From assembly GCA_004431415.1 (NCBI GenBank), contig QPMI01000572.1, positions 62,001 to 126,000 of the forward strand: a DNA stretch of 64,000 nt, written 5' to 3'. The notes below the pieces were generated by a model that saw nothing but the letters and a program-made list of their open reading frames with translations, ran no database searches and had not been told where the DNA came from. A program made the position numbers and the translations under genes. The DNA is from Cyanophora paradoxa CCMP329 (Eukaryota; Plantae; Glaucophyta). Positions 1 to 32,060 of this stretch are shown in pieces; within the stretch, counting starts at the first letter, position 1, and every line of letters begins with the position of its first letter.

Positions 1-3000
1 AACCTGTACACGGTCCAAGAAGGGACAACGCTGACCTGTGGTTGACCTTTGAATCGAGCCCTCCAGGCGCTGCGCTCACCGCGAGTACAATCTTCGACGA
101 CGGCGGCCGTTTGTACCTGCAGTATGCGGGTAATTTAGTCTTAGGGTGTTCCGGGTCGGAAAAGCAGGGGGAATCGCCACATGGGGGGGCCGGATTATCC
201 GCACCGGAAAGCATTCTGCGCCACGGCGTAATGCAAGTCTGACCCAGAGGCGGTAAGGGTGCCATTGCTGGTCCAGTTAGCCATCCCGGCGCTGAACACA
301 TCGACAGAGCACCTGCCGATGACCATGACTAATAGTTAGCGGCCGCCTTCAAATCTAAGCGCGAAGGCGCGGGGCGCTAAATCTCCTAGGGCTGGCCATG
401 GCCGCGGCCAGAACGCACCAGATAAGGAAGTCGCTGGGGAATTCGTCGCGGGGCGCCTCGAAGACGATGGCGGTCGCGTTCCGCTCGGTGACGTTGGGGG
501 AGAGCTCGCCGCAGAGCCGCACGGACACGGGCACGTCGCCCTCCGGCAGGTACCGCCCTGCGACCGTTTCGGACTGTCACTTGCGAAGCATGATCGATAT
601 CACGATCGTCGAGAACCAGTGAACGGGGAGCGCGACCTTTTACGGTGACGAGCAGTTGCCCGGCATTGTTCACAGATGCGACGGAGGGCGTCACGTGATC
701 GATAAGAGAATCTGCGAACAGCACCGCATTAGAATAATGTTTGAATCAATGATAGAGACGCAGAACACGCACTGATACTGATCATCGTAACCGAGGCGCG
801 GGCAGCGGAAACGTTTGAGTACACTTCAAATTGGAAAAAGTCCGTGAAAATGGCAGCCGGATCTCTAGAGACGGTTATTCGAAGCTCGTTCGGAAGCGTC
901 GTGGAGAAGCCAGCCGCAGACGAGCTGGTTTCGACCGAGAGTCGAACCGGACGACTGGCGACCGCGACGAGGTCCTGCTTTCGAAAGTAGACCGGCACGC
1001 CGGCGCGAAGCACGTGAACAGTGCAAAAGGCGGAAGACGCAATTGTGACCACTCTCGACGTGCAATTCAGCGAGACGACAAGAGGCGCCGATTCAAATAC
1101 GAGGACATTAGTTTCTTGGACGCGCGAGCACGATGACGAGTCTCGGCGGTCCGCGCAGAGCCACGTCGTGAGCACGCCGGGACCCGTCTGGGGAGAAAGC
1201 GGAGCAAACATGGTGCTTCTCCATGAGGTGCCAACACCCGTAACATTCCCGGCAGCCAGCAACGGTCCGTTCAGTGTCCCCATCCCCGTCAGCGCCACGT
1301 ACATCGGCGCCGTCCAGAGCGGCTGCCCGTTGCGCAGCGGCGTGTGCGTACAATTCAACGCTCCTCCATCGGGCAACGACGCATCTGCATTGTTCGGGCT
1401 GCAGACGGTCGCAGCTGTATTCGGAATATCTGCGATTGCGAAAATATGGTCGACGTTCGGAAAACATGACCGAATGCAATGGATTTGATGGCATTAGCAG
1501 AAACGAACCAATAGAGACCACGTGCGCGGATGCATTTCCAGGCGACACGGAAAGTCCTCCTGGGCCTGTGACCGGGAAGGCCGGCAGCGTCGTGTTCACC
1601 ACAAACTCGGCGCTCGCCCCAACGAGTGCTGGAAGGCTGTGAGGGCTTCCGAGGACACCGAACCCTGTGATTCTGCAGTCGAACTCGGGCGTTGGCCGTA
1701 TTCCATAAATAATACGATGCGTATACAAATGCGAAACGCACGACAGCATCGAAGCGCGAGCCCAGACAGGCACGCCGGACTTCAGCGGAGACAGCGAGCA
1801 CGAAAGTGGGGATCCCGCGCGCAGCAGGATCGTTTCTGCCGGCAGCAGAGTCTCCAGCAACATCAGCCCCGGAGTGCAGTTGACCGTCGCCGAGTCCGGC
1901 CGCGCTACCACAGCCACTGGTATCGCGCTGTGGAATTCGCAAGAGCCGTTCAACGAACACATGAGCACGACAAGCGACGCCATGCCGATGCGGGGGTAGG
2001 TCGGAGCGCGGAAGGATGTCGAGAACGAGGCCGAAACGAGGCCTGTCACGTTCTTTACAATGGGCGACCCCGCAGCGTCAGCGCCCGAGAGCACGCCCAG
2101 GCCCACGAAGGCAACGGCTGCGGATGTGGTTGTTATCGCAACTCCCTGCTTGAGCGGAACGTGGGTGCAGTTGAGAGTTTCCCCGTCGTCCACGACGACA
2201 TCAACGCCGGAGGGCTCGACCGATGCACATGTGGAATTTATGGCGTCGGGAAGATCTGAAGTAGGACAGCCAAACTCAGCACAGAAACAATACTACTGCA
2301 CGCATAGTTTTAATTGAACCGGAGGCCGATCTACAGGCCAGGTCGCTTCTAGCAAAAGAGCACGAAGAGTACGGACCGATAACGGATATTGTCCAGCTTG
2401 CAGCGCCTGGGTATACAAGCAGCTCGCCGGGCCCAGTCAACGGGAAAGCCCGCAACGTGACGGTAAAGACGTGCAAAACAAACGCCACAGCGGGCGATGA
2501 TATATTGACAACGTCTGGTCCGATCACGCCACTCGACGCGAGTCTGCGAAACGCGCGGCGTTCGGTCATGATCAACGCATGTCTGTCTTATCCACGTTGC
2601 GATCGAAGGCAAGCATTCCAGCCGCACCTCACGGATGCAGCACGTGCCCACACGGCGAACCCGTCACGACGCGCCGTTACGGAACAGTCGAACGCGCTCC
2701 CTGCCAGGTACAGATGCTTGCCGCTTTCGTTTTTCAGACCGGATGCACACGTAATATCCGCGAATTCTGGAGTCGTCGTCACCACGATCGCCACCGCCGC
2801 CTCCGCCACGCACGCGCCCCGGTCCCCGCCCGCGCAGCGGTGCACCACCAGCGACCCGGGGCCCGTCGTGGGCGCCGCCGGGACCGCCGTGCTGCTCGTC
2901 CACGAGCTCGCGACGCCCGTCACGTTGCCCACCGCGCTCAGCGGGCTCGCCAGCGTGCCCGTCCCCGTCAGCGCCACGTACGTCGGCGCCGTCCAGAGCG

Positions 3001-6000
3001 GCTGCCCGTCGCGCAGCGGCGTAAAGGTGCAGTTGAGCGCCGAGCCGTCGGGGACGGAGGCGTCGGTGTTGTTGGGCGAGCACGCCGTCGCGATGGATGT
3101 GGGGACGTCTAGGGACGGTAAGTATTAAAAGAGAATATGTGAATATATCGGCATCTTATAAATAGTCCGCCATTAGCAGAAACGAACCAATAGAGACCAC
3201 GTGCGCGGATGCATTTCCAGGCGACACGGAAAGTCCTCCTGGGCCTGTGACCGGGAAGGCCGGCACCGTCGTGTTCACCACAAACTCGGCGCTCGCCCCA
3301 ACGAGTGCTGGAAGGCTGTGAGGGCTTCCGAGGACACCGAACCCTGTGATTCTGCAGTCGAGCTCGGGCGTTGGCCGTATTCCATAAATAATACGATGCG
3401 TATACAAATGCGAAACGCACGACAGCATCGAAGCGCGAGCCCAGACAGGCACGCCGGACTTCAGCGGAGACAGCGAGCACGAAAGTGGGGATCCCGCGCG
3501 CAGCAGGATCGTTTCTGCCGGCAGCAGAGTCTCCAGCAACATCAGCCCCGGAGTGCAGTTGACCGTCACCGAGTCCGGCCGCGCTACCACAGCCACTGGT
3601 ATCGCGCTGTGGAATTCGCAAGAGCCGTTCAACGAACACATGAGCACGACAAGCGACGCCATGCCGATGCGGGGGTAGGTCGGAGCGCGGAAGGATGTCG
3701 AGAACGAGGCCGAAACGAGGCCTGTCACGTTCTTTACAATGGGCGATCCCGCAGCGTCAGCGCCCGAGAGCACGCCCAGGCCCACGAAGGCAACGGCTGC
3801 GGATGTGGTTGTTATCGCAACTCCCTGCTTGAGCGGAACGTGGGTGCAGTTGAGAGTTTCCCCGTCGTCCACGACGACATCAACGCCGGAGGGCTCGACC
3901 GATGCACATGTGGAATTTATGGCGTCGGGAAGATCTGAAGTAGGACAGCCAAACTCAGCACAGAAACAATACTACTGCACGCATAGTTTTAATTGAACCG
4001 GAGGCCGATCTACAGGCCAGGTCGCTTCTAGCAAAAGAGCACGAAGAGTACGGACCGATAACGGATATTGTCCAGCTTGCAGCGCCTGGGTATACAAGCA
4101 GCTCGCCGGGCCCAGTCAACGGGAAAGCCCGCAACGTGACGGTAAAGACGTGCAAAACAAACGCCACAGCGGGCGATGATATATTGACAACGTCTGGTCC
4201 GATCACGCCACTCGACGCGAGTCTGCGAAACGCGCGGCGTTCGGTCATGATCAACGCATGTCTGTCTTATCCACGTTGCGATCGAAGGCAAGCATTCCAG
4301 CCGCACCTCACGGATGCAGCACGTGCCCACACGGCGAACCCGTCACGACGCGCCGTTACGGAACAGTCGAACGCGCTCCCTGCCAGGTACAGATGCTTGC
4401 CGCTTTCGTTTTTCAGACCGGATGCACACGTAATATCCGCGAATTCTGGAGTCGTCGTCACCACGATCGCCACCGCCGCCTCCGCCACGCACGCGCCCCG
4501 GTCCCCGCCCGCGCAGCGGTGCACCACCAGCGACCCGGGGCCCGTCGTGGACGCCGCCGGGACCGCCGTGCTGCTCGTCCACGAGGTCGCGACGCCCGTC
4601 ACGTTGCCCACCGCGCTCAGCGGGCTCGCCAGCGTGCCCGTCCCCGTCAGCGCCACGTACGTCGGCGCCGTCCAGAGCGACTGCCCGTCGCGCAGCGGCG
4701 TAAAGGTGCAGTTGAGCGCCGAGCCGTCGGGGATGGAGGCGTCGGTGTTGTTGGGCGAGCACGCCGTCGCGATCGACGTCGGGGCGTCTGGGCGGCGCGC
4801 GGCGTCAGGGGCGGCCCGCGAGGGCGGCCGCGGGGGTCGCCTTCGGGGCCGGCGCAGCGCACCGATCGCATACAGCGGCCAGCTCGCCCCGCCCGGGCCC
4901 GCCACCAGCTCGCCCGGCCCCGTCACGGGGAAGGACCGCAGCGAAACCGAGAACGGGAACGAGTTGAAGGTCGCCGGCGGGGCCGAGATGTTCACGTTTT
5001 GCGCCCCGACCACGCCGCTCGCCGTCAGGCTGCCCCCGCCCCGTCAGCCGGCGGCGGCTGCGGATCCCGGCGGGCCAGCGCGAAAACGCCTCGCACGCAC
5101 CTCACGGACGCGGCCCTCACCCACACGGGACTCCCGCCGAGCGTGGGCGTCAGCGTGCAGTTGAAGGCGCTGCCCGCCATGTACAGCTGCGCGCCGCCGT
5201 CGCTGAGGGCCCCCGCCCCGCAGGCCAGCGCTGCCGCGTCGGGCGTCGTCGTCACCACGATCGCCACCGCCGCCTCCGCCACGCACGCGCCCCGGTCCCC
5301 GCCCGCGCAGCGGTGCACCACCAGCGACCCGGGGCCCGTCGTGGGCGCCGCCGGGACCGCCGTGCTGCTAGTCCACGAGCTCGCGACGCCCGTCACGTTG
5401 CCCACCGCGCTCAGCGGGCTCGCCAGCGTGCCCGTCCCCGTCAGCGCCACGTACGTCGGCGCCGTCCAGAGCGGCTGCCCGTCGCGCAGCGGCGTAAAGG
5501 TGCAGTTGAGCGCCGAGCCGTCGGGGATGGAGGCGTCGGTGTTGTTGGGCGAGCACGCCGTCGCGATCGACGTCGGGGCGTCTGGGCGGCGCGCGGCGTC
5601 AGGGCCGGCCCGCGAGGGCGGCCGCGGGGGTCGCCTTCGGGGCCGGCGCAGCGCACCGATCGCATACAGCGGCCAGCTCGCCCCGCCCGGGCCCGCCACC
5701 AGCTCGCCCGGCCCCGTCACGGGGAAGGGCCGCAGCGAAACCGAGAACGGGAACGAGTTGAAGGTCGCCGGCGGGGCCGAGATGTTCACGTTTTGCGCCC
5801 CGACCACGCCGCTCGCCGTCAGGCTGCCCCCGCCCCGTCAGCCGGCGGCGGCTGCGGATCCCGGCGGGCCAGCGCGAAAACGCCTCGCACGCACCTCACG
5901 GACGCGGCCCTCACCCACACGGGACTTCCGCCGAGCGTGGGCGTCAGCGTGCAGTTGAAGGCGCTGCCCGCCATGTACAGCTGCGCGCCGCCGTCGCTGA

Positions 6001-9000
6001 GGGCCCCCGCCCCGCAGGCCAGCGCTGCCGCGTCGGGCGTCGTCGTCACCACGATCGCCAACGCCGCCTCCGCCACGCACGCGCCCCGGTCCCCGCCCGC
6101 GCAGCGGTGCACCACCAGCGACCCGGGGCCCGTCGTGGGCGCCGCCGGGACCGCCGTGCTGCTCGTCCACGAGGTCGCGACGCCCGTCACGTTGCCCACC
6201 GCGCTCAGCGGGCTCGCCAGCGTGCCCGTCCCCGTCAGCGCCACGTACGTCGGCGCCGTCCAGAGCGGCTGCCCGTCGCGCAGCGGCGTAAAGGTGCAGT
6301 TGAGCGCCGAGCCGTCGGGATGGAGGCGTCGGTGTTGTTGGGCGAGCACGCCGTCGCGATCGACGTCGGGGCGTCTGGGCGGCGCGCGGCGTCAGGGGCG
6401 GCCCGCGAGGGCGGTCGCGGGGGTCGCCTTCGGGGCCGGCGCAGCGCACCGATCGCATACAGCGGCCAGCTCGCCCCGCCCGGGCCCGCCACCAGCTCGC
6501 CCGGCCCCGTCACGGGGAAGGGCCGCAGCGGAACCGAGAACGGGAACGAGTTGAAGGTCGCCGGCGGGGCCGAGATGTTCACGTTTTGCGCCCCGACCAC
6601 GCCGCTCGCCGTCAGGCTGCCCCCGCCCCGTCAGCCGGCGGCGGCTGCGGATCCCGGCGGGCCAGCGCGAAAACGCCTCGCACGCACCTCACGGACGCGG
6701 CCCTCACCCACACGGGACTCCCGCCGAGCGTGGGCGTCAGCGTGCAGTTGAAGGCGCTGCCCGCTATGTACAGCTGCGCGCCGCCGTCGCTGAGGGCCCC
6801 CGCCCCGCAGGCCAGCGCTGCCGCGTCGGGCGTCGTCGTCACCACGATCGCCACCGCCGCCTCCGCCACGCACGCGCCCCGGTCCCCGCCCGCGCAGCGG
6901 TGCACCACCAGCGACCCGGGGCCCGTCGTGGGCGCCGCCGGGACCGCCGTGCTGCTCGTCCACGAGCTCGCGACGCCCGTCACGTTGCCCACCGCGCTCA
7001 GCGGGCTCGCCAGCGTGCCCGTCCCCGTCAGCGCCACGTACGTCGGCGCCGTCCAGAGCGGCTGCCCGTCGCGCAGCGGCGTAAAGGTGCAGTTGAGCGC
7101 CGAGCCGTCGGGAATGGAGGCGTCGGTGTTGTTGGGCGAGCACGCCGTCGCGATCGACGTCGGGGCGTCTGGGCGGCGCGCGGCGTCAGGGGCGGCCCGC
7201 GAGGGTGGCCGGGGGGGTCGCCTTCGGGGCCGGCGCAGCGCACCGATCGCATACAGCGGCCAGCTCGCCCCGCCCGGGCCCGCCACCAGCTCGCCCGGCC
7301 CCGTCACGGGGAAGGGCCGCAGCGGAACCGAGAACGGGAACGAGTTGAAGGTCGCCGGCGGGGCCGAGATATTCACGTTTTGCGCCCCAACCACGCCGCT
7401 CGCCGTCAGGCTGCCCCCGCCCCGTCAGCCGCCGGCGGCTGCGGATCCCGGCGGGCCAGCGCGAAAGCGCCTCGCACGCACCTCACGGACGCGGCCCTCA
7501 CCCACACGGGACTCCCGCCGAGCGTGGGCGTCAGCGTGCAGTTGAAGGCGCTGCCCGCCATGTACAGCTGCGCGCCGCCGTCGCTGAGGGCCCCCGCCCC
7601 GCAGGCCAGCGCTGCCGCGTCGGGCGTCGTCGTCACCACGATCGCCAACGCCGCCTCCGCCACGCACGCGCCCCGGTCCCCGCCCGCGCAGCGGTGCACC
7701 ACCAGCGACCCGGGGCCCGTCGTGGGCGCCGCCGGGACCGCCGTGCTGCTCGTCCACGAGGTCGCGACGCCCGTCACGTTGCCCACCGCGCTCAGCGGGC
7801 TCGCCAGCGTGCCCGTCCCGTCAGCGCCACGTACGTCGGCGCCGTCCAGAGCGGCTGCCCGTCGCGCAGCGGCGTAAAGGTGCAGTTGAGCGCCGAGCCG
7901 TCGGGGATGGAGGCGTCGGTGTTGTTGGGCGAGCACGCCGTCGCGATCGACGTCGGGGCGTCTGGGCGGCGCGCGGCGTCAGGGCCGGCCCGCGAGGGCG
8001 GCCGCGGGGGTCGCCTTCGGGGCCGGCGCAGCGCACCGATCGCATACAGCGGCCAGCTCGCCCCGCCCGGGCCCGCCACCAGCTCGCCCGGCCCCGTCAC
8101 GGGGAAGGGCCGCAGCGAAACCGAGAACGGGAACGAGTTGAAGGTCGCCGGCGGGGCCGAGATGTTCACGTTTTGCGCCCCGACCACGCCGCTCGCCGTC
8201 AGGCTGCCCCCGCCCCGTCAGCCGGCGGCGGCTGCGGATCCCGGCGGGCCAGCGCGAAAACGCCTCGCACGCACCTCACGGACGCGGCCCTCACCCACAC
8301 GGGACTTCCGCCGAGCGTGGGCGTCAGCGTGCAGTTGAAGGCGCTGCCCGCCATGTACAGCTGCGCGCCGCCGTCGCTGAGGGCCCCCGCCCCGCAGGCC
8401 AGCGCTGCCGCGTCGGGCGTCGTCGTCACCACGATCGCCACCGCCGCCTCCGCCACGCACGCGCCCCGGTCCCCGCCCGCGCAGCGGTGCACCACCAGCG
8501 ACCCGGGGCCCGTCGTGGGCGCCGCCGGGACCGCCGTGCTGCTCGTCCACGAGGTCGCGACGCCCGTCACGTTGCCCACCGCGCTCAGCGGGCTCGCCAG
8601 CGTGCCCGTCCCCGTCAGCGCCACGTACGTCGGCGCCGTCCAGAGCGGCTGCCCGTCGCGCAGCGGCGTAAAGGTGCAGTTGAGCGCCGAGCCGTCGGGG
8701 ATGGAGGCGTCGGTGTTGTTGGGCGAGCACGCCGTCGCGATCGACGTCGGGGCGTCTGGGCGGCGCGCGGCGTCAGGGGCGGCCCGCGAGGGTGGCCGCG
8801 GGGGTCGCCTTCGGGGCCGGCGCAGCGCACCGATCGCATACAGCGGCCAGCTCGCCCCGCCCGGGCCCGCCACCAGCTCGCCCGGCCCGTCACGGGGAAG
8901 GGCCGCAGCGAAACCGAGAACGGGAACGAGTTGAAGGTCGCCGGCGGGGCCGAGATGTTCACGTTTTGCGCCCCGACCACGCCGCTCGCCGTCAGGCTGC

Positions 9001-12000
9001 CCCCGCCCCGTCAGCCGGCGGCGGCTGCGGATCCCGGCGGGCCAGCGCGAAAGCGCCTCGCACGCACCTCACGGACGCGGCCCTCACCCACACGGGACTC
9101 CCGCCGAGCGTGGGCGTCAGCGTGCAGTTGAAGGCGCTGCCCGCCATGTACAGCTGCGCGCCGCCGTCGCTGAGGGCCCCCGCCCCGCAGGCCAGCGCTG
9201 CCGCGTCGGGCGTCGTCGTCACCACGATCGCCACCGCCGCCTCCGCCACGCACGCGCCCCGGTCCCCGCCCGCGCAGCGGTGCACCACCAGCGACCCGGG
9301 GCCCGTCGTGGGCGCCGCCGGGACCGCCGTGCTGCTCGTCCACGAGGTCGCGACGCCCGTCACGTTGCCCACCGCGCTCAGCGGGCTCGCCAGCGTGCCC
9401 GTCCCCGTCAGCGCCACGTACGTCGGCGCCGTCCAGAGCGGCTGCCCGTCGCGCAGCGGCGTAAAGGTGCAGTTGAGCGCCGAGCCGTCGGGGATGGAGG
9501 CGTCGGTGTTGTTGGGCGAGCACGCCGTCGCGATCGACGTCGGGGCGTCTGGGCGGCGCGCGGCGTCAGGGGCGGCCCGCGAGGGTGGCCGCGGGGGTCG
9601 CCTTCGGGGCCGGCGCAGCGCACCGATCGCATACAGCGGCCAGCTCGCCCCGCCCGGGCCCGCCACCAGCTCGCCCGGCCCCGTCACGGGGAAGGGCCGC
9701 AGCGAAACCGAGAACGGGAACGAGTTGAAGGTCGCCGGCGGGGCCGAGATGTTCACGTTTTGCGCCCCGACCACGCCGCTCGCCGTCAGGCTGCCCCCGC
9801 CCCGTCAGCCGGCGGCGGCTGCGGATCCCGGCGGGCCAGCGCGAAAGCGCCTCGCACGCACCTCACGGACGCGGCCCTCACCCACACGGGACTCCCGCCG
9901 AGCGTGGGCGTCAGCGTGCAGTTGAAGGCGCTGCCCGCCATGTACAGCTGCGCGCCGCCGTCGCTGAGGGCCCCCGCCCCGCAGGCCAGCGCTGCCGCGT
10001 CGGGCGTCGTCGTCACCACGATCGCCACCGCCGCCTCCGCCACGCACGCGCCCCGGTCCCCGCCCGCGCAGCGGTGCACCACCAGCGACCCGGGGCCCGT
10101 CGTGGGCGCCGCCGGGACCGCCGTGCTGCTCGTCCACGAGCTCGCGACGCCCGTCACGTTGCCCACCGCGCTCAGCGGGCTCGCCAGCGTGCCCGTCCCC
10201 GTCAGCGCCACGTACGTCGGCGCCGTCCAGAGCGGCTGCCCGTCGCGCAGCGGCGTAAAGGTGCAGTTGAGCGCCGAGCCGTCGGGGATGGAGGCGGCGT
10301 CGGTGTTGTTGGGCGAGCACGCCGTCGCGATCGACGTCGGGGCGTCTGGGCGGCGCGCGGCGTCAGGGGCGGCCCGCGAGGGCGGCCGCGGGGGTCGCCT
10401 TCGGGGCCGGCGCAGCGCACCGATCGCATACAGCGGCCAGCTCGCCCCGCCCGGGCCCGCCACCAGCTCGCCCGGCCCCGTCACGGGGAAGGGCCGCAGC
10501 GGAACCGAGAACGGGAACGAGTTGAAGGTCGCCGGCGGGGCCGAGATGTTCACGTTTTGCGCCCCGACCACGCCGCTCGCCGTCAGGCTGCCCCCGCCCC
10601 GTCAGCCGGCGGCGGCTGCGGATGCCGGCGGGCCAGCGCGAAAACGCCTCGCACGCACCTCACGGACGCGGCCCTCACCCACACGGGACTCCCGCCGAGC
10701 GTGGGCGTCAGCGTGCAGTTGAAGGCGCTGCCCGCCATGTACAGCTGCGCGCCGCCGTCGCTGAGGGCCCCCGCCCCGCAGGCCAGCGCTGCCGCGTCGG
10801 GCGTCGTCGTCACCACGATCGCCACCGCCGCCTCCGCCACGCACGCGCCCCGGTCCCCGCCCGCGCAGCGGTGCACCACCAGCGACCCGGGCCCGTCGTG
10901 GGCGCCGCCGGGACCGCCGTGCTGCTCGTCCACGAGCTCGCGACGCCCGTCACGTTGCCCACCGCGCTCAGCGGGCTCGCCAGCGTGCCCGTCCCCGTCA
11001 GCGCCACGTACGTCGGCGCCGTCCAGAGCGGCTGCCCGTCGCGCAGCGGCGTAAAGGTGCAGTTGAGCGCCGAGCCGTCGGGGATGGAGGCGTCGGTGTT
11101 GTTGGGCGAGCACGCCGTCGCGATCGACGTCGGGGCGTCTGGGCGGCGCGCGGCGTCAGGGGCGGCCCGCGAGGGCGGCCGCGGGGGTCGCCTTCGGGGC
11201 CGGCGCAGCGCACCGATCGCATACAGCGGCCAGCTTGCTCCGCCCGGGCCCGCCACCAGCTCGCCCGGCCCCGTCACGGGGAAGGGCCGCAGCGGAACCG
11301 AGAACGGGAACGAGTTGAAGGTCGCCGGCGGGGCCGAGATGTTCACGTTTTGCGCCCCGACCACGCCGCTCGCCGTCAGGCTGCCCCCGCCCCGTCAGCC
11401 GCCGGCGGCTGCGGATCCCGGCGGGCCAGCGCGAAAACGCCTCGCACGCACCTCACGGACGCGGCCCTCACCCACACGGGACTCCCGCCGAGCGTGGGCG
11501 TCAGCGTGCAGTTGAAGGCGCTGCCCGCCATGTACAGCTGCGCGCCGCCGTCGCTGAGGGCCCCCGTCCCGCAGGCCAGCGCTGCCGCGTCGGGCGTCGT
11601 CGTCACCACGATCGCCACCGCCGCCTCCGCCACGCACGCGCCCCGGTCCCCGCCCGCGCAGCGGTGCACCACCAGCAACCCGGGGCCCGTCGTGGGCGCC
11701 GCCGGGACCGCCGTGCTGCTCGTCCACGAGGTCGCGACGCCCGTCACGTTGCCCACCGCGCTCAGCGGGCTCGCCAGCGTGCCCGTCCCCGTCAGCGCCA
11801 CGTACGTCGGCGCCGTCCAGAGCGGCTGCCCGTCGCGCAGCGGCGTAAAGGTGCAGTTGAGCGCCGAGCCGTCGGGGATGGAGGCGTCGGTGTTGTTGGG
11901 CGAGCACGCCGTCGCGATCGACGTCGGGGCGTCTGGGCGGCGCGCGGCGTCAGGGGCGGCCCGCGAGGGCGGCCGCGGGGGTCGCCTTCGGGGCCGGCGC

Positions 12001-21000: not shown

Positions 21001-24000
21001 GGGCGCCAGCGTGCAGTTGAAGGCGCTGCCCGCCATGTACAGCTGCGCGCCGCCGTCGCTGAGGGCCCCCGCCCCGCAGGCCAGCGCTGCCGCGTCGGGC
21101 GTCGTCGTCACCACGATCGCCACCGCCGCCTCCGCCACGCACGCGCCCCGTCCCCGCCCGCGCAGCGGTGCACCACCAGCGACCCGGGCCCGTCGTGGGC
21201 GCCGCCGGGACCGCCGTGCTGCTCGTCCACGAGCTCGCGACGCCCGTCACGTTGCCCACCGCGCTCAGCGGGCTCGCCAGCGTGCCCGTCCCCGTCAGCG
21301 CCACGTACGTCGGCGCCGTCCAGAGCGGCTGCCCGTCGCGCAGCGGCGTAAAGGTGCAGTTGAGCGCCGAGCCGTCGGGGATGGAGGCGTCGGTGTTGTT
21401 GGGCGAGCATGCCGTCGCGATCGACGTCGGGGCGTCTGTGTAGCGCCATTCAGGCTTTGACGCGTCATGATCAGGTGCTTTCTATATCTATGGGTGGCAT
21501 GCGGGAGCAGGTTGATGGTAGGCATATTTACCAATGCTGATCAGATTTAGGGAAATGTTGCCTGGGGTAAAGGATATCCAGCCAGGTCCCGTTGTCGGAA
21601 ACGAGGGAAGAGTCACGTTGAAGAAGAACACAGAATTCGATCCTTCAAGTGCGGGCAGGAAAAAAGGCGCCTCGAAAATTCCTCCACTCTGCACCCTGCA
21701 GCATGCACAGAAGAAAGAATGTTGTGAGCACAAATATTCAGGCGAGAATCATTTTATTTTTAATTTCTTCGACACGCACGTGATTGCCTGGGCGCGCGAC
21801 CAAACCGTCACGTTTCCCCGTTGTGGATAAAGCTGACACAGAAAGCTTGTTCCCGCAAACATTAGTGTTTGGTTGGCCACAAGAAGTGGTTCGGAAAGGG
21901 TGAGCCCGGGCACGCTGCAGGTGACGAGAAGCCCATCTGGTCTTGCTACAATCGCCGCCTGTATCCGCCCCTGCTCTCGGCACGTGCCCGACGCCGTGCA
22001 GATCAGTACAACGAGCGCGGCTGGTCCCAGTTTGGGGTACTCCGGCGCCTTGAACGATGTCTGGAAGGACGTGGCAGCGGCGTCGGAGGCATTTTGGACG
22101 AGTGCGTTCCCTTCGACGTCACGGCCAGCGAAAAGACCTTCGCCAACAAGGACGAACGAGCTCCCAAGCGCTGTAATCGCCGTCCCATTCTTGAGGGGTA
22201 CGTGAGTACAGTTGACCCACTCGCCTTCCAGGACAGTCATGTCCGCCTCAATCGAGGAGCAGGTCGTGTTGATGGCGTCCGGAAAGTCGACCACGGTGAA
22301 ATTGACGATCGCGAGCCCGCCCGGGCCCGTCGTTACATTCGCAGGCCCAAGGACGTTCGACGTCGACACGCTGAAGAAGAGCTCGTTGCCGGCGATGGGG
22401 GAGACGGCGGACGCGGTGAGGCCGGGCGAGAGAATCACCGAGATGTTGGCGGCCGCCGAGTAGGAGCGCTCGAGCACCCCCGTCGCTGTGGAGTACGGGA
22501 CAATGGTGCACGCTAGAGCTCCTGCCGTTCCCGAAGGGACGGATCTCGAGCTAGCCAAGGGCCCACAATCGACCAAGGTCTGTACGGGTGGAACTGCGGA
22601 ATCGCTCGTCAGCCATTGCGACGAAAACCTATTTTAGAACGCGGCAGTTATTAGTAATTATATAAGCACCGTGCACGATGACGGAAGCGTTCGCATCCGC
22701 AACGGGGACGCACACATTGCTGACGTTGAAACCGAAGAACACTGCGCGTGCACAACGCGATTAGAAACGATATCGATGCTGGCGAACCCAGCAATACGGT
22801 TTTGACAAGAGATTTATCATTACCTTTTCCACTATTTGGATACGAGGTGTTGAGAGAAAAGGAGAGTTTGGATGTAGTTACGGTTCTTAAGGTCGAGTAA
22901 TATATTGCATCTGGAACATAGGAGGTAGATCCCCAATTATGGTCTGCGGCGAGAATGTTCCCCAGACTTGCGATCGCGGCCGCTCCGGATCCCGTTTCAC
23001 GCGAAATACACAGCGACGTGTCCAGTGTTGAAGCCCGCCGGACACGCGTCGCATTTCCGAGGACACTGACGTTTTCCGCAGCGTCAGCCCAAATCGAGTC
23101 CTTCGAGTTGTATATCATTGTGTCTGGCATGCGCACCGTGGGAAGAATGTACATACTCTGAGGTTGCCAGAGGCGAGCTCGCTGATAGCGGAAATTCCAG
23201 AGCCGCAATCGAAGACCGACGTGGAGTCCGCAGTCCCTATGAGCATATATGTCTCATCTGAAGTCGCGATATCGAGCGAAGGCCAGAGCTTCGAAGTCAC
23301 GGCCATCTTGAAATAAAAACGCAACAACGGCACCAGTGCCGTCGTAGTGAACTCCGCAAGAAAGGCCGTATAACGATCCGAGTCTGCGGATGCGATCATT
23401 AGCTTCTCCGATCGATTAATTTGCCAATTCGAATTCGAATTTCGTCACTCACGAGGGCTAACCGCCGACGAAAGAATTGGCGCGACGGGATCTGTGCCAA
23501 GACGGGCGTATGTTCATCATGCGGCACGCGCAATCACAACGAAAAGCAACGTTGTTGTCGAAACGCACTAGCGCCGAACGCAGCAATGATGGCAGCATCA
23601 GATCCCGGAGCTGCCCGCGCTGAGAGAGTCAACCGTTCCCGCTCCAATGGATACGCCGCGCCTCTGCGCCTCGGGTAGAACGTGCATGTGAACTGCACAC
23701 ATGAGCAACACAATCGTAAGAGCTCATGATCATTCTCTTTCTAAATCGCGAACGCCAGAAGAAACTATATATACCGTTGTGTTGCGCTCCAAAAATATAT
23801 ACGCCCCGCTTCTGTCGCTCGGATCGGCCGGAATTAGCGTCGAGCAGTTGAGTTTGCTGGTGGTATCTGGTATTCCAGTCGACTCGAACGCTGACAGACA
23901 GTAATCAATTCAGTGCTGCCCATGTCTCGGACATCCACAAAAGCAGCGCGTTCGTCGGAGGGCACCTTCGAACGCCCAGAACCCGGTGAACATATCTGTG

Positions 24001-27000
24001 GGGAGCAGCTTCGCGCCACCCGTGACATAGGACATCTGTGAGTTGCAAAGCACCAAACGTTTTATTAACCTCAAGCTCATAATTTGAGAAGTCGTTTATA
24101 AACCGCTGCCTGGAGTGAGCAAAAACTGCACCTGGCAGCCATACGACGTGAACATTGGCCGTGTGCGCGCAGCAAGAGCCCTTGAGACATCTGCGAAAGT
24201 CGACCAGTTGCCGACTGCGGGTTCGTAGTACAAAAACGTCGTCCCCGGATCCTTAATGCTCGTGCTCGAAGACCTATATCTGCTGCGTGAAATGCTGCTA
24301 ATCGTAGAGAAACTATAGCTGCACAAACCCGTAAAGAAACCAGAGCGCGTTGTTGCACGTGAAGACATGCGCGAAGGCCGAAGCGACTGGGGCGCTAGGA
24401 AGCGCTTTCCATGCCTTCACAACAGCAGAGGCGACTCGCAGGTCGACCGTCCAGAGATCAGATATAAACACTCCGGCGGACGATAATCCGCCGTACACGT
24501 ACTGCTAGTGTGTCATTCACCAATTTCTAGCGAAGCATATGATCATGAGTGCGGGGTTCCGAACCAGTTGCCCGTTATAAACTGAAATCGGAATAATTAT
24601 ACTCGAATTAGTAACTCTAATCGAATAATGTATTCGTAGTAAATCGATCCACACCTTGGGCTGTCGATCCCTCCCGCCCCTGTGGACTGCTGCTGTCTTC
24701 AGGCGATGAAGGGATTTCGATCCTCCACGTGTTGGATGCGATGTCGTAAGAGAACTTATGTGTCGCGCGACTGAAAGTCAGTACAAGGTTTTGAAAGCAA
24801 AACAATACCAATGGCATCTAGAGCGCACGAGATCGTTAGAGAGACACTGGACGAAAGGCGACGTTCCTGCGTATGCGCATATTATAATTATCGATTGTTG
24901 AAGATATTCACGCGCTGCGATTATCTCAATGAATCAGCTCCTAAATAGTGACTTTCGAACCTGTGGCCATCATTTCGTACTTGAGATTGAAAGTCCATGT
25001 GCCAGCGTACACGTTCACCGGCCCCGGCTCGTAGCACTGCGGGTGCGACAATGTCATGATTTGTTTTTTTGAATTTTTCAGCGACATGAAGATGGGCGCG
25101 CGGACCGTGCCGTCGCAGGGGAAATACTCGAGACAGAACGAGGGCACAGTCACTTCGCCTTTGTCATTCACCTCCGGTTCCGAGTACCGGACACAGCAAT
25201 CTACCGTGCACGTGTATGCCTCGCCCCCCGGGTACTGCGAGACTTGCAAGGCTGCGGTCGCGAGACAGACTCTTTGAGCACTTCGTGGTATCTATGACTT
25301 CGATTTAATTTGCTCTAGATCTGCGCACTGATATTGAGAGATGGCAACATCATTGTGACCGACTCGTACGAAGAGCTGCGCGCGAGAGATTGAATAATTA
25401 GTGAGTGAAGGCCACATTCTGCAAAGAGGCCGCTTGCGCACCTGACGGAGCCGCAGGTCACGGGTCCGTCTCCAGTGCAGAACAAGGTCGAGTTTTTGTA
25501 GCTGGAAACGGGACCGTAGGATCCCTCTCCGACCTAATCAGCGGCATAAGTTTAATGATAGCTTATGATTAGCAGCAGAACCGAAAATTGTCTAGGCAAA
25601 CTGCGAAGCAGGCAACTGTTGCGTGCGCACTCTAATAGAGTCTGCGCTCATGCTCAGTGCAAAGCCAAAGAACGACCCAAGCGAGCACGCACCAGGCGAG
25701 TACGACCCGAAGCCGTCGCCTCGGAGAAACGCAGGGGTAGTGTGATTGATCGTGAGCACAGTGCCGGCTGGAGCATAGAGCCCGCTGGCGCATGTGGTCC
25801 CTACGACCCAGCTCTTTGAGGACCCTGAGGTACCTGCATTCTCTCGCGTGTCCTGTACTCACGGAATTCAAATCTTGCGGTCAATTTTTAAGTTACACGT
25901 GCATGCAGTTTTGTGAACACGGCACCGTAATAGTGCCCGCTCGGCGATTCTCGTATCCGTACATCATTATGAAGCCACTTCCACTTGCGGTCGCGGCCGT
26001 AAATCTAACCTGTTGATGTATATTCGCATTACTAGGAGACAAGCTCGGTCTTTATTCGGAAAGATTAAGGGCGGATACCAGCACTTTGAAAGAAGTCGGG
26101 AAGAAGCTGGACGTGTAAACAGTGCCCAAGGTCTCTGAGGTGACGTTGGAAGACGTGTAGGTGCCGATCAGAGGCGCGGCCGAGGTCTCTCCGCTGTGAA
26201 CTTGGACCATGCCATCGCTCCCGACGTCGAATTTCGTGAACCAAAAGCGCAGTCGCACACTGTCCAAACAGCTGAGGGAGCATCGGCCTCGAGGCGGGCT
26301 TGGCACTCGTACGATCCTGTTTAATGAAAGGATAATATAAGCTGATTTAAACCGACGTTCGCCATGCTGCTTGTAAGCAGAGAGTCCTTCAATAACAACG
26401 CTTGCGCGCGCCCGCTCACCACGATCGCGAGGCGCTTGTGCCGGCTGCGAAGCTCGCCTGCAGGATGCGGCCGGCCGCGCACTGCCCGTTGCCCATCCCG
26501 GCGTAGATTCTCTTCGCCTTGGAATCCAGGGCCGTGAAATGACTGCGCGTGCAAGCGCATGCGCAACATCAACAATTCTCTCTCTGCAAAGCGAAGCTTA
26601 CTTGCAATTGGGGCCCCCGCTCACTTGGATCGTGCGTACGGCATCGGCTGCAATACACCTCTAATAGCGCTCGCGAAGTCTGAGGGCCGGGCGATTGCAA
26701 TGTTAATGTTCTTGTATTGAAAGGTCCTGATCATGATTGAGAAGAGGTGTGACGAACCTATAGTCAGAACTGACGCAGAAGGGCAGAACCACTGTGTGCC
26801 GGGGAGGGCCGCGTCCGTGCTGTTCGAGCGGCCGCCGATCACGAAGACCTTGGGGCTCCCGGGTACCGACACAACCGTGTACTGGTCGTAGCTGTCTGTC
26901 GGCAGCAGCGGCGATGTACCCCATGTGCCGAATCCCAATCCGTAGCTCACGATGGCGGGGAGGTTCGTCGAGTTCGGCTCTGCGCATGCAGCATATTTAG

Positions 27001-30000
27001 CCGAATGTGTCAATTCGTTTCAGCTCACGCTCATGCCGAGGTCATTGAATGCATATGCGGACCGGCGAGACTAGTCATTCGCATTACACTCGAGGACCTC
27101 ACACCATCCTCGAACCCTCCCACAACACCAAAGACATACTCTGTGCGTTTGTTGTCCGAAGAGTAGAACACAATGGCTGCGGTCACGACAAAAAGAACAC
27201 TTATAGATTGATAATCGCCATTTGCAATTAGTCAGCTCCTGTTACGCACGAGCACTCGATGGCGCAGTTCTGCTCATGCTGTTTCCGTTGCCGATAAGCT
27301 GCGATTTAATGCCAGGATCCGAGAAGTGCGGCCGACAGAAGATGGTGACAGAGGTCGAGCCCAGTACGCAGGCCGTTGCGGAATCGGAAACGTTTGTAAA
27401 TGAAACCGTGACGATAGCGCACGGAATGGTCGCATTGAACGTTCCCCTAAATGTGTGCGGCACGCTCAGGGATGCAAGGACCCAGGAGGGCGAAAAGTCT
27501 CCCACTGCGCATGCGTCGAGGGTCGACGTCAATGTAGGGCTGAGTGCAGCATCGAATTCGAAATGCGCACAATCGATGTCCGTCTGTATTAGAGTGACGT
27601 TCGCATTCGCATTCCAGTCAAAGCTCAGCGGAGTTGCTTCGGCTATCACGTGCGACATCGAAGGAATCCCCTGAGCTGCTGATAACTGCGAAGAGGGACT
27701 ACCGTAGGACGCAACGACCCTGCCGTGCGCACGAAAGTAACAATTGATGAGATGTTGTTTTATCAATCGGTTTTTTTAAAAGTTTCAAATGAATCGAATT
27801 ACGATACCTGCACAGAGCTCTTTCGCCAGGGAGTACCGCGTCAAGATCGCAAGACACGAGAGGGCGAGCGTCGTTCCAGTCAGAGACTGCATATACGTAC
27901 GAACGTATAAATTTCCAAAACGAAGTACGCGTCACATTGATGTCGACGTCGATTCAACAATGCACAGCTCTAGCTATAGCTGTGTATGCGCAGCATAATC
28001 AAAAGATTAGCACCTGTTATGCTGTACACGAAAGGCCCAGCGACACCGGTGGAAGCGAAACCCATTTGTTTCATCGATTCAAGAACGTCTGCGAGCTCGA
28101 GATTACATGTCCTTCAGGTTCTTCAGAACTCCACACATATGCATATATACACCACGCACCAGAGCCGGTTGCGAGAGCGACGCATTCCCCGCTTTGCTGT
28201 ACGTGGATGCCGCGCGAGAACTTCTTCCCCGACAACGCAGACGCCAAAGGCAGCCAGCGCGTATACGTACCGCCTCCGGCTGTATGTTACAAATGCATAG
28301 AGCTTCAGCATCGAAATTCGGTCTGCATGCGAAAGTTCCCTTCGATACGTGAAATAATCGACGCACCAGCGACTGCTGCGTCCAGATCCGCATAAGTTCC
28401 CACCTGATAGTCTCCCGACGAGTTTGTTTCCCTGCATCGACAATCAAGTGAATATATATAGGGCCAGCTGCGACTCTGTCGATTGCCGCGATTTGCCCTT
28501 CGCATCCGCTTACCCAGCAAAGAAAAGGAATCGTGAACCACAGAGTATCGACATTCCGAAAGCTCTTCCTCGAAAAGACGGGTCGGCTGGGACAAGCTGC
28601 GAACGGTGCTCTCTATTATCAGCTATCCTTAATTGCCAATTCAACGCCCAAAGAAAATGAACGAGTGTTTGCCTCTCTCCACGCCGGCACATCAGCAGTG
28701 GTGTTTAAAAACCTGCACACACACGTACACATTGAAACAGTGTCGACGTCAGATGTCATTCATGCAACCATAAACTCTATATATGCAGCGCACCACAGAT
28801 CACTGAAGTATTCTGAAGTGTTAGAGCAATATCCACCAGCCACATAAAGGACGCTGTTCGCTTCCTGCGCGCGCGGGATCCGTTGCATTCAATGCAATTG
28901 CAGGTGCCGCCACAGGGAACCCTCGAACAGCGGATCCGGATCTCCCGTCTCACCTGCAACGAGGCGCCTTCGCGCCCCTTGAAGCCTGCAGCAGAGCCTC
29001 CGGTACCCGGTGCCACGACCTCCGTCCATGTGCCGGTGGAGAAGTCTGAGTGTCTTGTGTGAGTAGTGTATTTTGCATCCCCGATGCACTTCACTCTGAG
29101 CTCTCGCTCGTGCGTATATATACGTATACGCACCGCGTTTTAGCATATCGTTCAGACATTCTGTCACACCGGTCTGCGTGTTGGTGCCGTATCCCAACCT
29201 GCAACGATGATTTATATATATCATGATCAATTGCAGCACGCGATCATTTGCAGTGTTTCGGTTAAAATTTTACGTACCCCACGTACAAAGCCCCTCCAGC
29301 CGACGCCATTACCTAGAAACAAATAAGTGAGTGTATGCATTGGATATTGGGTGCACATGTACATATGCATGGCACATTCGAAACCGCTCGCAATCGCGAA
29401 ACGCACCGGGTAGCGGCGGGCTGGCGCCCGCCCGTTGACCACTGCTGCTGGAATAAGAGTCATAATATACGTCTGCCAATTGAATTCGTAGTGAGTCGCG
29501 ACCAAATTTCCCGCCGCATCCACTCCGCCGAATGCAATCAGCTTGCTGCCGCTGACGCACGAGCCTTGGCCGTAAAGAGGAACAGCAAAGCGGTAGTTCC
29601 CGAGAAAAACCTCCCATTCCCCACTGACTGCCGCGACCACACGAGAATTTCAAGTTAGTTTGAGGTCGTAGCAAGGAGCGAGCCTGGTTTTCTAATACAT
29701 TGCAATTGTCGCAAATCGCATGCAGGCGCGCACACGCAAACAGTCGGTCATTAATCTCCGCAGCACTCGACGGCGTGCCGTGAACAAGCGACCCGCCCCA
29801 CACAACCATCCGAGCACCCCCCACCCCGAAGGCGGCGGCTGAGTGGACAGGCGGCGCTACGAGGGAACGAGGTCCTCCTTGCTGCAGCTGCACGAGCCCG
29901 AGTGTCAGTGGATTCCGTTCATCATTGCTTCAAGCCCGCAACCTGTTCGCGCACTTTGAACAGGTTGCGGGCTTGAAGCAGAGGGAGTCTCCAACCTGCA

Positions 30001-30324
30001 GCGTGTCGATCAGCAACACGCGCGCGATATTAATGCGGCTTGTGAAAATGATGCATTTGAGCATTTGAATATTAACAATGGAAACGAACCACTTGTACTA
30101 GTTGGGGTACCGGTCGAGTTGCACGATGGATAACTGCTCGCAGAAGTGCTTGCAGAACCGCAGCAGGCTTTGGGCATGCAGAGAATGAGGAAGAGAGTGC
30201 TGAATAAAACGAGAAGGAATTCGAATCGCCCCGAATTGGATTTTATTCGTCGCCGAAAACTTCCTGCAGCTGCAGCTGCAGCTGGTTGCCTCCGGGTCCT
30301 TGCAGGTGCGAAATCGGAATTCAT
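1..30324 (-). CDS. Giant multi-exon predicted secreted/surface protein: signal peptide, Kelch repeats, CUB, Kelch repeats, then about 55 tandem Cys-containing Ig-like modules; 3' end lies beyond the left window edge
   Basis: ATG at 30324 (MNSDFAP...) is followed by hydrophobic FLLVLFSTLFLILCMPKACCG. Minus-strand exon fragments join through GT-AG introns in consistent phase where checked (e.g. TS-G|WRLPLLQARNLFK|LQQGG; array introns; SI|DIPN; FLI-W|CSVD; AF-R|YKRP). Many N-x-S/T sequons. The frame is still open at position 1. Not every N-terminal junction was resolved. Confidence 0.75.
1493..4773 (-). repeat. Tandem duplication with 1679-bp period (about 1493-3094 vs about 3172-4773) encoding a four-module block of the giant protein
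   Basis: The sequence is near-identical at a 1679 offset (ORFs 1522/3201, 2060/3739, 2276/3955, 2349/4028). Similarity breaks inside an intron at CATTAGCAGAAACG. Confidence 0.95.
4451..21438 (-). repeat. Coding tandem array, 794-bp unit x about 21.4 copies; each unit = 167-nt exon + 75-nt intron + 481-nt exon + 71-nt intron = 216 aa spliced
   Basis: The marker GAT(C/T)GACGTCGGGGCGTCTG recurs 22 times from about 4771 to about 21419 at about 794-bp spacing. In the first unit, introns are at 4788-4862 (GTGCGC...CTGAC...CCCAG) and 5030-5100 (GTGCGT...CTGAC...GGCAG) on the minus strand. 794-75-71=648. Confidence 0.97.
23830..24820 (-). other. Second Kelch-repeat region of the giant protein
   Basis: FSYDIASNTWRIE...PQGREGST, YVYGGLSSAGVFISDLWTVDL, LWFLYG|YR and YEPAVGNWST. 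Confidence 0.7.
25920..26315 (-). other. CUB-like domain of the giant protein
   Basis: VRLRFWFTKFDVGSDGMVQVHSGETSAAPLIGTYT followed by RFTAATASGSGFIMMY matches the CUB pattern (L.F..FD...D.V.V..G....P.IG.Y ... F......SGF...Y). Confidence 0.65.
28100..29890 (-). other. Kelch/galactose-oxidase-type repeats (N-terminal part of the giant protein)
   Basis: Exon peptides HSAAAFGVGGARMVVWGG, GQGSCVSGSKLIAFGGVD, DFSTGTWTEV...GREGASL, YFSDLW and RGRAFGMSILCGSRFLFFAG show the hydrophobic-GG and D...W Kelch pattern. Confidence 0.75.
29926..29980. repeat. Perfect 23-bp inverted repeat with 9-nt loop spanning an exon/intron junction
   Basis: TGCTTCAAGCCCGCAACCTGTTC-gcgcacttt-GAACAGGTTGCGGGCTTGAAGCA. Confidence 0.97.
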
Positions 30325-31415
30325 CACATCAGGGGCGAGGTAGTTCTTGGTTTTCCTCCTCCGCCGGACTCTTTCCCACCACCAGCTCTTCTCTTCGCAC
30401 GCGCTCCGATAATGTACGCACACGAGAGTACGACTGTGCCCCCTGCAATCGCATGGGCAGGGGCTGGTCCAGCGGCAGCTCCCGCGCATGCGGCCCGTGG
30501 TACTGCGCATGCGGGGGGATGCGTCGCGGTCGCTGTTTCGCAGCCGCGGACGCTGACGCTGACTATCGAGCAGCTGTACGTATACACGCGCCGGTGACTC
30601 AATGTCTTGCGCATGCACGGCAGCTGATCCGCGGACACGCATCATGGCTTTGCAGCTCAATGCGCATGCGTCGACGGGCGCCATGCCAGCGCTAACTGCA
30701 GCTTCCGAAGTTCGCAGAGGCTCGCCAAATCGAGCACCAGCGCTGGCGCGCGAGCTGCGGGTCTAGCTAACGCTATATATATGTATAGTTACCGCTGGCC
30801 GGGCCGGGTGGCCGCTTAGCTGATCATAACGCCTGCTTTCATGCATATATATGGCCAAGCGCGCGCGGTTTGGACCGCATGCGCATCCATATGCATATGC
30901 TTCCAATTGTATACCGTAGTACACTCGATATGCGTGTGCGGGGATTTAGAGCCGCGGGAGGTGCTCAGCTGCAGCTGTAGCTATATGACTACTAAACTTT
31001 GAAAGCTTAAGCTACAGTTGACGTCGCACATGCATGCATATGGACATAAGCGTATACGTACTACGGTACATGCATGCGCATATGTGCATACGCATGCTCC
31101 AGTTTGTGTCTTGCTACGTATATACAGCTGCTGGGTGCTATTATCGAAAATCGCTGCTAAAGCGCTATCGCATGGACTGCAGCTGCGCAGCAGCCTGCGC
31201 TCCGATCCCGAATCCCGATTCCCCCCATGCCATGACCGTCGGACTGCAGTGATTCTCAGAGTCTGCGACTCGGCGAGCCTACTAGGCTAGGCCCTTAGCG
31301 CATACTACGAGTACCCCGGGATACGTACCCGGTGGCCCACTGGCCCAGTCACTGAGTGGTCCCGGATCCCCGGTACACCGTCTACGTATATATACCGTAG
31401 TACGTAGTACGGAAA

Positions 31416-32060
31416 CTTGCCGCAGTGCCAACACTGCCAATTTGCAAGCGCTAGCTACGCGTACGGTTGCCGCTAGGGATCATCGGCCCGGCGGATGCCG
31501 CGCTCAAGTTTGAGTGCACTAAAACTTGAGCGTTTTAGTCAAGTTTTAGTTTTAGTTTTAGTGGCCTGCTAAAACTTGAGCTAAAACGGCGGCTGGAGGG
31601 GGGGTTTCAGGTGGCAGAACTGCCCTATTCTGGGCGCAGAACCGCCCCATTCCGGGTCTTAATCGTACTTCCATCGGATATAAAGCCCTTCTGAGGCTAG
31701 GGTGCCTCGTTAAGCACCTCTTCTGAGGCTAGGTTGCCCTTGGAAGGCCTTCGTATACCCCCCCCCTCAGGACCGCACTTCTTTATAATTACTCGAAAAT
31801 CGTGTGTCTAGAGACAGAACCTGGTAGGAAAGGCATATAGAAGTAGCTGAGACAGTATCTAGGTCGAAGCCTCGCAGGCAGCGCCCCTCTCTCATTCATG
31901 GATGGGCGCGCTCTTGTATGGACTCAAGTTTTAGGCTAAAAACGCTACCTCATATTTAGGCTCGCACTTTTAGTTTTAGTGGGGGAGGCTAAAACTTGAG
32001 CTAAAACGGCAACCCTACCGCACTGCAGCCGCAGTGCCAACAGCAGCCAACTTGCATAAT
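31416..32060. mobile_element. Degenerate non-autonomous DNA-transposon-like (MITE/hAT-like) repeat cluster
   Basis: CTAAAACTTGAG or its reverse complement occurs about 6 times. There is a 32-bp near-palindrome at 31501-31532, an about 40-bp direct repeat (31550-31590 and 31967-32010), and inverted ends GTACGGTTGCCG (31461) and CGGCAACCCTAC (32007). No transposase ORF. Confidence 0.45.

Follow-up and report, generated by a model that had tools for sequence, protein, structure and literature searches.

Organisation of the locus

The DNA studied here is a stretch of 64,000 nucleotides from the glaucophyte Cyanophora paradoxa CCMP329 (assembly GCA_004431415.1, contig QPMI01000572.1, positions 62,001 to 126,000 of the forward strand), which is called the window in the following, and its main feature is a very long, repetitive coding region on the minus strand. 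In the reading that we prefer, to which we give a probability of roughly 0.68, this region is one giant intron-rich gene encoding a heavily N-glycosylated, disulfide-stabilised extracellular rod protein, in which a head with Kelch-like and CUB-like sequence would be followed by a stalk of tandem immunoglobulin (Ig)-like modules. About 7,300 amino acids of coding sequence lie inside the window, composed of about 1,294 residues of head (from a rough exon chain), about 320 residues of modules upstream of an array of near-identical units, 4,536 residues in the array itself and about 1,150 residues downstream of it. The stalk modules were counted as three upstream, 42 in the array and ten downstream, i.e., 55, and the original prediction of more than 7,000 residues and about 55 modules, which had been made from the letters of the DNA without database searches, was thus borne out by our own count.

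In the direction of transcription, exon 1 (30324-30111) is followed by the head exons, by exons that join head and stalk (23383-22600, stop-free frames) and by three divergent modules, M1 to M3 (22594-21437), of which M1 (22594-22289) and M2 (22288-21947) share one exon and M3 is split by an intron. The array occupies 21436-4789, and ten further divergent modules with intron positions as in the array follow at 4788-774. Two short exons (711-636 and 557-419) come next, and further coding-looking sequence (311-1) continues to the point where the gene leaves the left edge of the window. All gaps among the coding-looking exons from 30324 to 774 are at most about 360 nt in the rough chain, none at the junction of head and stalk is longer than an intron, and the stalk has neither a start codon nor a signal sequence of its own. 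The database searches and the folding reported below were run on single exons or modules and not on the joined protein, and exons were concatenated only for codon bookkeeping and translations.

The 21-unit array

A 27-base anchor was found 22 times between 21444 and 4796 at a spacing of 786-797 bp, and unit alignment defined 21 units (21436-4789) that differ from their consensus by only 1-8 substitutions (>99% identity), while the 22nd unit is divergent. The 794-bp unit consists of a 481-nt exon, a 71-nt intron, a 167-nt exon and a 75-nt intron, and its 648 coding bases specify 216 amino acids, or two modules of about 108 residues. The 481-nt exon ends at an AG/GTGCGT donor, which is the sole donor that keeps successive units in frame. 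In unit 5, which is intact, the codons of exon 1 occupy 18272-17796 and those of exon 2 occupy 17721-17557.

Intron 1 must be spliced out because its 71 nt are not a multiple of three and the frame would otherwise be lost. In the array, intron 2 contains no stop and leaves the frame intact, and the corresponding sequence of the divergent downstream units has both a stop and a change of frame. Divergent units also keep the phase-2 position at which the split module is interrupted, with a 69-nt, AT-richer intron at 3420-3352, and the splice sites are untouched by variants in all 21 units. The requirement of the frame, the diverged counterparts, the conserved phase-2 position and the intact splice sites establish that the array introns are real.

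Variant sites among the 21 units number 28 in exons and 10 in introns. The exonic variants are divided equally into 14 synonymous and 14 non-synonymous ones, as compared to 28% synonymous expected (one-sided binomial p = 0.012), and none of them creates a stop. The synonymous excess and the lack of new stops demonstrate a mild coding constraint on the array. A non-coding satellite was also considered and was rejected because of this excess, because the splice phases are conserved and because the paralogues described below are homologous at the protein level. Certain variants are shared by blocks of neighbouring units, e.g., one occurs in units 1-7 only and another in units 13, 16, 17, 18 and 20, and the units must therefore be truly different copies and not one copy assembled repeatedly. 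Every unit begins and ends in the same phase, and it is therefore possible, by phase arithmetic, that splicing skips whole units in frame. Downstream of the array, a four-module super-repeat of 1,679 bp was recognised by comparison of 4792-2830 with 3113-1151, which are 93% identical. The sole insertion in the array is an in-frame CGC in unit 15 (10346-9550), which adds one residue to the loop after the first Cys of one of its two modules, the B module defined below.

The 21 units are near identical including their introns, which points to recent unequal crossing-over or gene conversion. Such exchange would keep the units near identical and would also make the length of the rod evolutionarily labile. 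The guanine plus cytosine (GC) content of the window is 65-77%, except for 52-55% at 22-32 kb and about 60% at 1-4 kb, and it reaches 77% in the array. The GC content of third codon positions (GC3) is 0.98 in the array (21436-4789) and in an array-like copy of the B module at 3109-2780, but only 0.66-0.73 in the divergent modules at 22594-21779, 3935-3423 and 1427-774 (0.71 at 22594-21779). The array introns have 80-88% GC as compared to 49% for the homologous intron at 3420-3352. This pattern looks like GC-biased gene conversion acting on a recombining array. The locus is an unusually clean case of a coding unit and its introns in concerted evolution and offers a natural test bed for GC-biased gene conversion. 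The low-GC island at 22000-32000 spans the head and the first modules. The published C. paradoxa assembly was made from PacBio reads with Canu and Quiver, and the genome is reported to have 67.6% GC (PMC6704402).

The stalk module and its relatives

The modules of the stalk alternate between two types. The B type lies wholly in exon 1 of the unit and has an extra Cys pair, and the A type is interrupted by intron 1. When 29 modules were aligned, two invariant Cys and the motifs (N)C-T-x-x-P and TGPG were apparent, with an extra C-x5-8-C pair in one type, and the alignment thus reproduced the alternating modules of about 108 residues and the Cys and TGPG motifs that had been described from the sequence. 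Members of the family are about 100-110 residues long and have two invariant Cys at a distance of 12-20 residues, the second of which is followed by C-T-x-x-P-x-R-x-G, and a G-P-G turn that precedes the last strands. Five N-x-S/T sequons are present per unit.

None of the 29 modules and none of the array exons matched a Pfam family at E up to 1, and the module profile had no match among PDB sequences at E up to 10. A word-index protein search with exon 1 of the array (159 residues), which was subject to a length filter, also gave nothing. When the profile was run against 1.84 billion representative proteins, six matches at E <= 1e-3 (2e-13 to 1e-4) were obtained, of which five are credible relatives. 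Three of them are EukProt models of Cyanophora paradoxa itself, tig00020902_g14973 (P0001), tig00000882_g5278 (P0002) and tig00020556_g11025 (P0004), each with 7-8 matched stretches, and a local re-scan of these models gave 7-10 weak domain rows. The other two are environmental fragments, P0003 and P0006 (SRR21524757, ERZ4201041), from one Logan run and one ENA metagenome. The ERZ4201041 fragment is encoded at 415-1275 of a 1,389-bp contig and has three clear modules. This contig has 32% GC, and the family must therefore also occur in at least one AT-rich organism, compositionally unlike Cyanophora. The remaining match, a Bacteroidales protein (P0005, E 9e-7), was rejected as a relative after hhalign found nothing. 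Based on these searches, the expectation of an unrecognised module type was confirmed, and the family is, judged from its sequence, real, rare and undescribed.

The three EukProt models show that paralogues sharing the module exist in Cyanophora paradoxa. They have the same module of 100-108 residues with two invariant Cys, C-T-x-x-P-x-R-x-G and TGPG, and their subtypes alternate as they do here. On the other hand, the modules of the paralogues share only 16-26% identity with that of the array and follow a three-subtype period as compared to two subtypes here, and these models, which are fragmentary, contain no near-identical array, no extra Cys pair and no Kelch head. A relationship between the module and TIG domains was examined and rejected, because hhalign against the Pfam-called TIG of tig00020902_g14973 gave a probability of 0.3% and no TIG match was found among the 29 modules. 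Three findings are new here, namely the family to which the module belongs, the lack of the stalk in the searched protein library and the 21-copy intron-bearing array. The Ig-like family, which is without a Pfam model, could join the domain catalogues.

Fold of the module

The AlphaFold2 model of a B module of the array (18272-17943), computed with the 29-row alignment, is a seven-strand sandwich with a predicted local distance difference test score (pLDDT) of 82.5 and a predicted template modelling score (pTM) of 0.75. Foldseek against the PDB gave nothing at E <= 1e-3, and returned only generic Ig V, FN3 and MG domains. An exhaustive structural aligner found its best match in a filamin domain of TRIM3 (Z 9.7, root-mean-square deviation 2.2 A over 94 residues), followed at Z 8-9.5 by FdeC, invasin, intimin, complement and macroglobulin MG domains and other filamins. 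The structural neighbours in the Atlas were MG2, Big_2 and FN3 clusters at template modelling (TM) scores of 0.65-0.71. The module is thus predicted by modelling to be a generic E-set Ig-like sandwich. In a model of the two successive modules M1 and M2, M1 failed (pLDDT 40-50) and M2 reached a pLDDT of 78-89 in ten-residue blocks, so that the structural check proposed earlier supported an Ig-like fold for one module and did not succeed for the pair.

As compared to known systems, the best structural match is the filamin/ABP280 family (filamin, Dictyostelium gelation factor, TRIM/Lin-41), with further filamin domains at Z 8.4-9.0, and its repeats also form rods as tandem arrays. The seven-strand sandwich of about 95-100 residues agrees with that family, but the stalk module has no sequence match to the filamin model PF00630, and the filamins are cytosolic proteins without disulfides or glycosylation sites, unlike the predicted stalk. 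Invasin, intimin and macroglobulin domains lie within 1 Z unit of filamin, and the likeness is therefore one to the general fold only.

Head and tail of the predicted protein

Exon 1 opens with an ATG at 30324 and encodes an Arg-rich start of 34 residues followed by a hydrophobic stretch of 15-17 residues, with a Kyte-Doolittle maximum of 2.85 at residues 36-50. The original prediction of a signal peptide stands as far as this strongly hydrophobic stretch is concerned, but by its sequence the segment may be either a signal peptide or a type II anchor, which fits equally. The donor of exon 1 at 30111 and an acceptor at 29839 are compatible, both being in phase 1, and Kelch-like sequence begins immediately after the acceptor. 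By crude dynamic programming, about 31 exon segments with about 1,294 codons could be linked into a chain that runs in frame up to the first module, with introns of at most about 360 nt. This chain certainly contains errors, above all at its 5' end.

Three Kelch-like regions were read in the head. Region 1 (29838-28014) comprises about eight short exons of the rough chain with GG-doublet and Trp blade motifs, region 2 (27176-26758) comprises two exons with blade-like motifs, and region 3 (24614-23754) comprises about five exons. When 30 exon-level or stop-free pieces were run against Pfam, the head and stalk pieces gave only sub-threshold Kelch matches. The Kelch-family matches fall in four exons across the three regions, with E from 7e-4 to 0.1 for exons tested singly, all below the Pfam gathering scores. 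They are those at 29640-29410 (PF24681 E 7e-4, Kelch_2 0.015, Kelch_1 0.042), at 24504-24316 (PF24681 E 0.0038, the attractin/LZTR1 propeller PF24981 E 0.0099, Kelch_3 0.028), at 24817-24620 (Kelch_3 E 0.064) and in region 2 (Kelch_6 E 0.097). The best PDB sequence match of region 1 was 5a10 (E 0.02), which we take to be a Kelch-fold protein, and the Kelch-like exon at 24501-24329 gave nothing useful against PDB sequences.

A CUB-like domain was read from splice phases and is spread over three exons (26542-26420, 26316-26079 and 26009 to about 25899). Its core exon of 79 residues (26315-26079), which holds only part of the split domain, did not match Pfam at E up to 10, and its PDB sequence matches included no CUB. 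The matches of this exon to designed 'Pizza' propellers in the PDB, at E >= 0.02, were taken as noise. CUB clusters were found among its language-model neighbours in the Atlas at 0.85-0.89, and the CUB call is a lead and not a test. The two Kelch regions and the CUB domain claimed from the letters are thus weakly supported, as the Kelch matches are below cut-off and the CUB neighbours are without a Pfam or PDB counterpart.

The rest of the head consists of a single 140-residue exon with five Cys in a stop-free frame (27676-27257), for which neither a Pfam nor a usable Atlas match was found, and of Cys-rich exons recognised from their translations (25813-24961), which had no Pfam match. The exons at 25813-25442 contain short C-x-S-G-x-Y and G-S-Y-S-P-G-x-C repeats, which presumably resemble ephrin-receptor-like or furin-like repeats. 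A short stop-free C-x5-C-x2-C stretch at 29995-29943 on the minus strand, located between exon 1 and the first Kelch exon, looks PSI- or EGF-like but cannot join in phase to its neighbours and was left out, and it may be an alternative or dead exon.

The combination proposed here, secretory entry with a Kelch propeller and a CUB-like domain in one ectodomain, is that of attractin and MEGF8, and one head exon gave the weak match to the attractin/LZTR1 propeller model mentioned above, although the Kelch and CUB calls here are below threshold. Those proteins also carry EGF, PSI, C-type lectin and laminin-EGF domains and a C-terminal membrane span, whereas no EGF, PSI or lectin Pfam match was obtained in the head frames tested here, so that the contrast drawn with them from the start is fair. 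Moreover, the predicted protein is about five times longer and its stalk belongs to a new Ig-like family.

At the other end of the stalk, the exons at 711-636 and 557-419 (24 and 45 residues) read like one IPT/TIG domain. They had no Pfam match, each being too short, and their BLASTP comparison with tig00020902_g14973 was not significant. In that paralogue (P0001), Pfam-supported TIG and PKD domains follow the modules, and the gene in the window seems likewise to continue into TIG-like exons.

Discussion

Our results describe a coding array with real introns and a stalk module with paralogues in the same species, and we prefer to read the whole minus-strand region as a single gene. Several points weigh against this reading. 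The gene model comes from the genomic sequence only, and the stalk is covered by no public gene model, as not one match below E 1e-30 was found among the 1.84 billion proteins. The gene extends past position 1 of the window, so that its C-terminus is outside the window. All Kelch and CUB calls are below curated thresholds and are weak. An exon chain such as that of the head can nearly always be found and is therefore no proof of continuity, and the charged N-terminus of 34 residues is as compatible with a type II anchor as with a signal peptide, and with such an anchor the head would be membrane-proximal rather than at the tip. Since the first module failed in the two-module model, the geometry of the rod is assumed and not modelled. 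As assembled, the frame is broken from unit 1 on by 29 one-base deletions, which are distributed over 11 of the 21 units, and if they are real, the protein ends at the first array unit. Finally, about 17 kb of 99.5% identical units are hard for older long reads, and the copy number may be mis-assembled.

Some of these points lead to other explanations of the locus. The weak exon chain across the junction of head and stalk would be accounted for by two or more genes, namely a Kelch/CUB secreted or membrane protein at 30.3-22.7 kb and a repeat protein starting at about 22.6 kb, and so would the sharp change from 52-55% GC in the head to 77% in the array. The paralogue models P0001, P0002 and P0004, which bear module arrays without a Kelch Pfam match, also agree with such a division, but they start inside modules and look like fragments. 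We consider separate genes rather unlikely, because the first modules (22594-21779) share the low GC of the head, which places the GC step inside the stalk and not at the junction, and the junction is bridged without a gap longer than an intron. In addition, the stalk lacks an ATG and a hydrophobic segment of its own, though its Cys pairs and sequons imply secretion. In the single-gene reading, head and stalk are connected by their strand, their spacing and this need of the stalk for a signal peptide, from which we infer a single transcript. The frameshifts, on the other hand, raise the question of a decaying pseudogene or a dead repeat expansion, in which the deletions would be real and the array would no longer be coding. 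The exons are indeed not spared, as 23 deletions are exonic and 6 intronic in proportion to length, and the lack of a public gene model for the stalk would also agree with decay. However, the frame-breaking changes are deletions only, and 25 of the 29 (86%) fall in G/C runs of at least 3, which hold only 22% of the unit bases; this is the pattern of residual long-read consensus error and not of mutational decay. Ten units are fully intact, the substitutions show a synonymous excess and create no stop, and each of the 21 units has kept its splice sites. Consensus error is thus a much more likely source of the deletions than pseudogenisation, and a dead array is improbable. The near-identity of the units also allows that the assembly has inflated a shorter array or collapsed a longer one, so that 55 would not be the true number of modules, and the clustering of deletion errors in units 1-3 and 6-8 fits with this. 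Such an artefact is unlikely, yet to be reckoned with. The distinct, block-structured substitutions among the units mean that many different copies really exist, and an error of this kind would alter the count and not the nature of the feature, so that it is compatible with the single-gene reading.

If the region is indeed a single gene, the following architecture can be proposed. The protein would enter the secretory pathway via its hydrophobic segment at the N-terminus. This segment, the Cys pairs, the dense sequons and the Ig-like rod are together indicative of an extracellular glycoprotein that is either secreted or anchored in the membrane. The likely ligand-binding part would be a head of about 1,300 residues with Kelch-type blades, a CUB-like domain and Cys-rich repeats. 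The head would be followed by 55 tandem Ig-like modules of about 108 residues, alternating between the A and B types, which may form a semi-rigid rod. A filamin-type domain forms a bead of about 3.5-4 nm, and 55 beads of this length would extend to about 200 nm. IPT/TIG-type domains would come after the rod, and an anchoring or polymerising part would lie beyond the window. If the N-terminal segment is cleaved and the protein is anchored at its C-terminus, the propeller/CUB head would occupy the tip and serve in binding or sensing; with a type II anchor, it would be next to the membrane. The 42 central modules, as 21 copies of a two-exon unit that is homogenised, would allow the length of the rod to change quickly between strains. 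The original prediction of a length-tunable adhesin, receptor or cell-covering protein is therefore supported in its first part, as 21 near-identical intron-bearing units indicate a recent change in copy number, and its second part, the role at the cell surface, is one that we can only infer.

Giant surface proteins with a rod and a head are a known design. In algae, MST1 of Chlamydomonas is an extracellular glycoprotein with tandem Ig-like domains and many disulfides that forms flagellar hairs (PMC10602792). The predicted stalk resembles MST1 in being a tandem Ig-like, disulfide-rich extracellular glycoprotein of an alga, by analogy only, but MST1 differs in being composed of nine Ig-like domains, six Sushi domains and a polyproline helix, and it lacks a propeller head such as that predicted here. 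Cyanophora has two kinds of mastigonemes, and the proteins of these are not named in the available part of the genome report (PMC6704402). A role in hairs or surface fibrils is attractive but is pure analogy. It would be a long shot that this gene encodes one of the two mastigoneme kinds or another surface fibril, with a single-chain rod of about 200 nm made of a lineage-restricted Ig-like family, a propeller/CUB sensor head at its tip or base and a 21-copy unit that sets the length, which gene conversion would homogenise and which unequal crossing-over or the skipping of units in splicing could shorten in frame. The gene is no more than a candidate for such structures in Cyanophora. The public protein set seems to lack what is one of the largest genes of this key, early-branching alga, and a literature search turned up no publication on it. 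The likely explanation of its absence from the protein set is that the repeats have defeated gene prediction.

Other features of the window

Just upstream of the giant gene, an open reading frame (ORF) of 767 amino acids on the minus strand (32764-35067) has a WD40 repeat at its start (E 6e-8). On the plus strand, long ORFs at 50291-56268 match HYDIN/CFAP65/VesB-like Ig domains (E 1e-11 and 3e-9) and related ciliary Ig models, and they probably belong to a CFAP65- or hydin-like flagellar gene. Next to them, 56805-57854 of the plus strand gave a weak calponin-homology match with an E value of 3.5e-4, which is below the cut-off.

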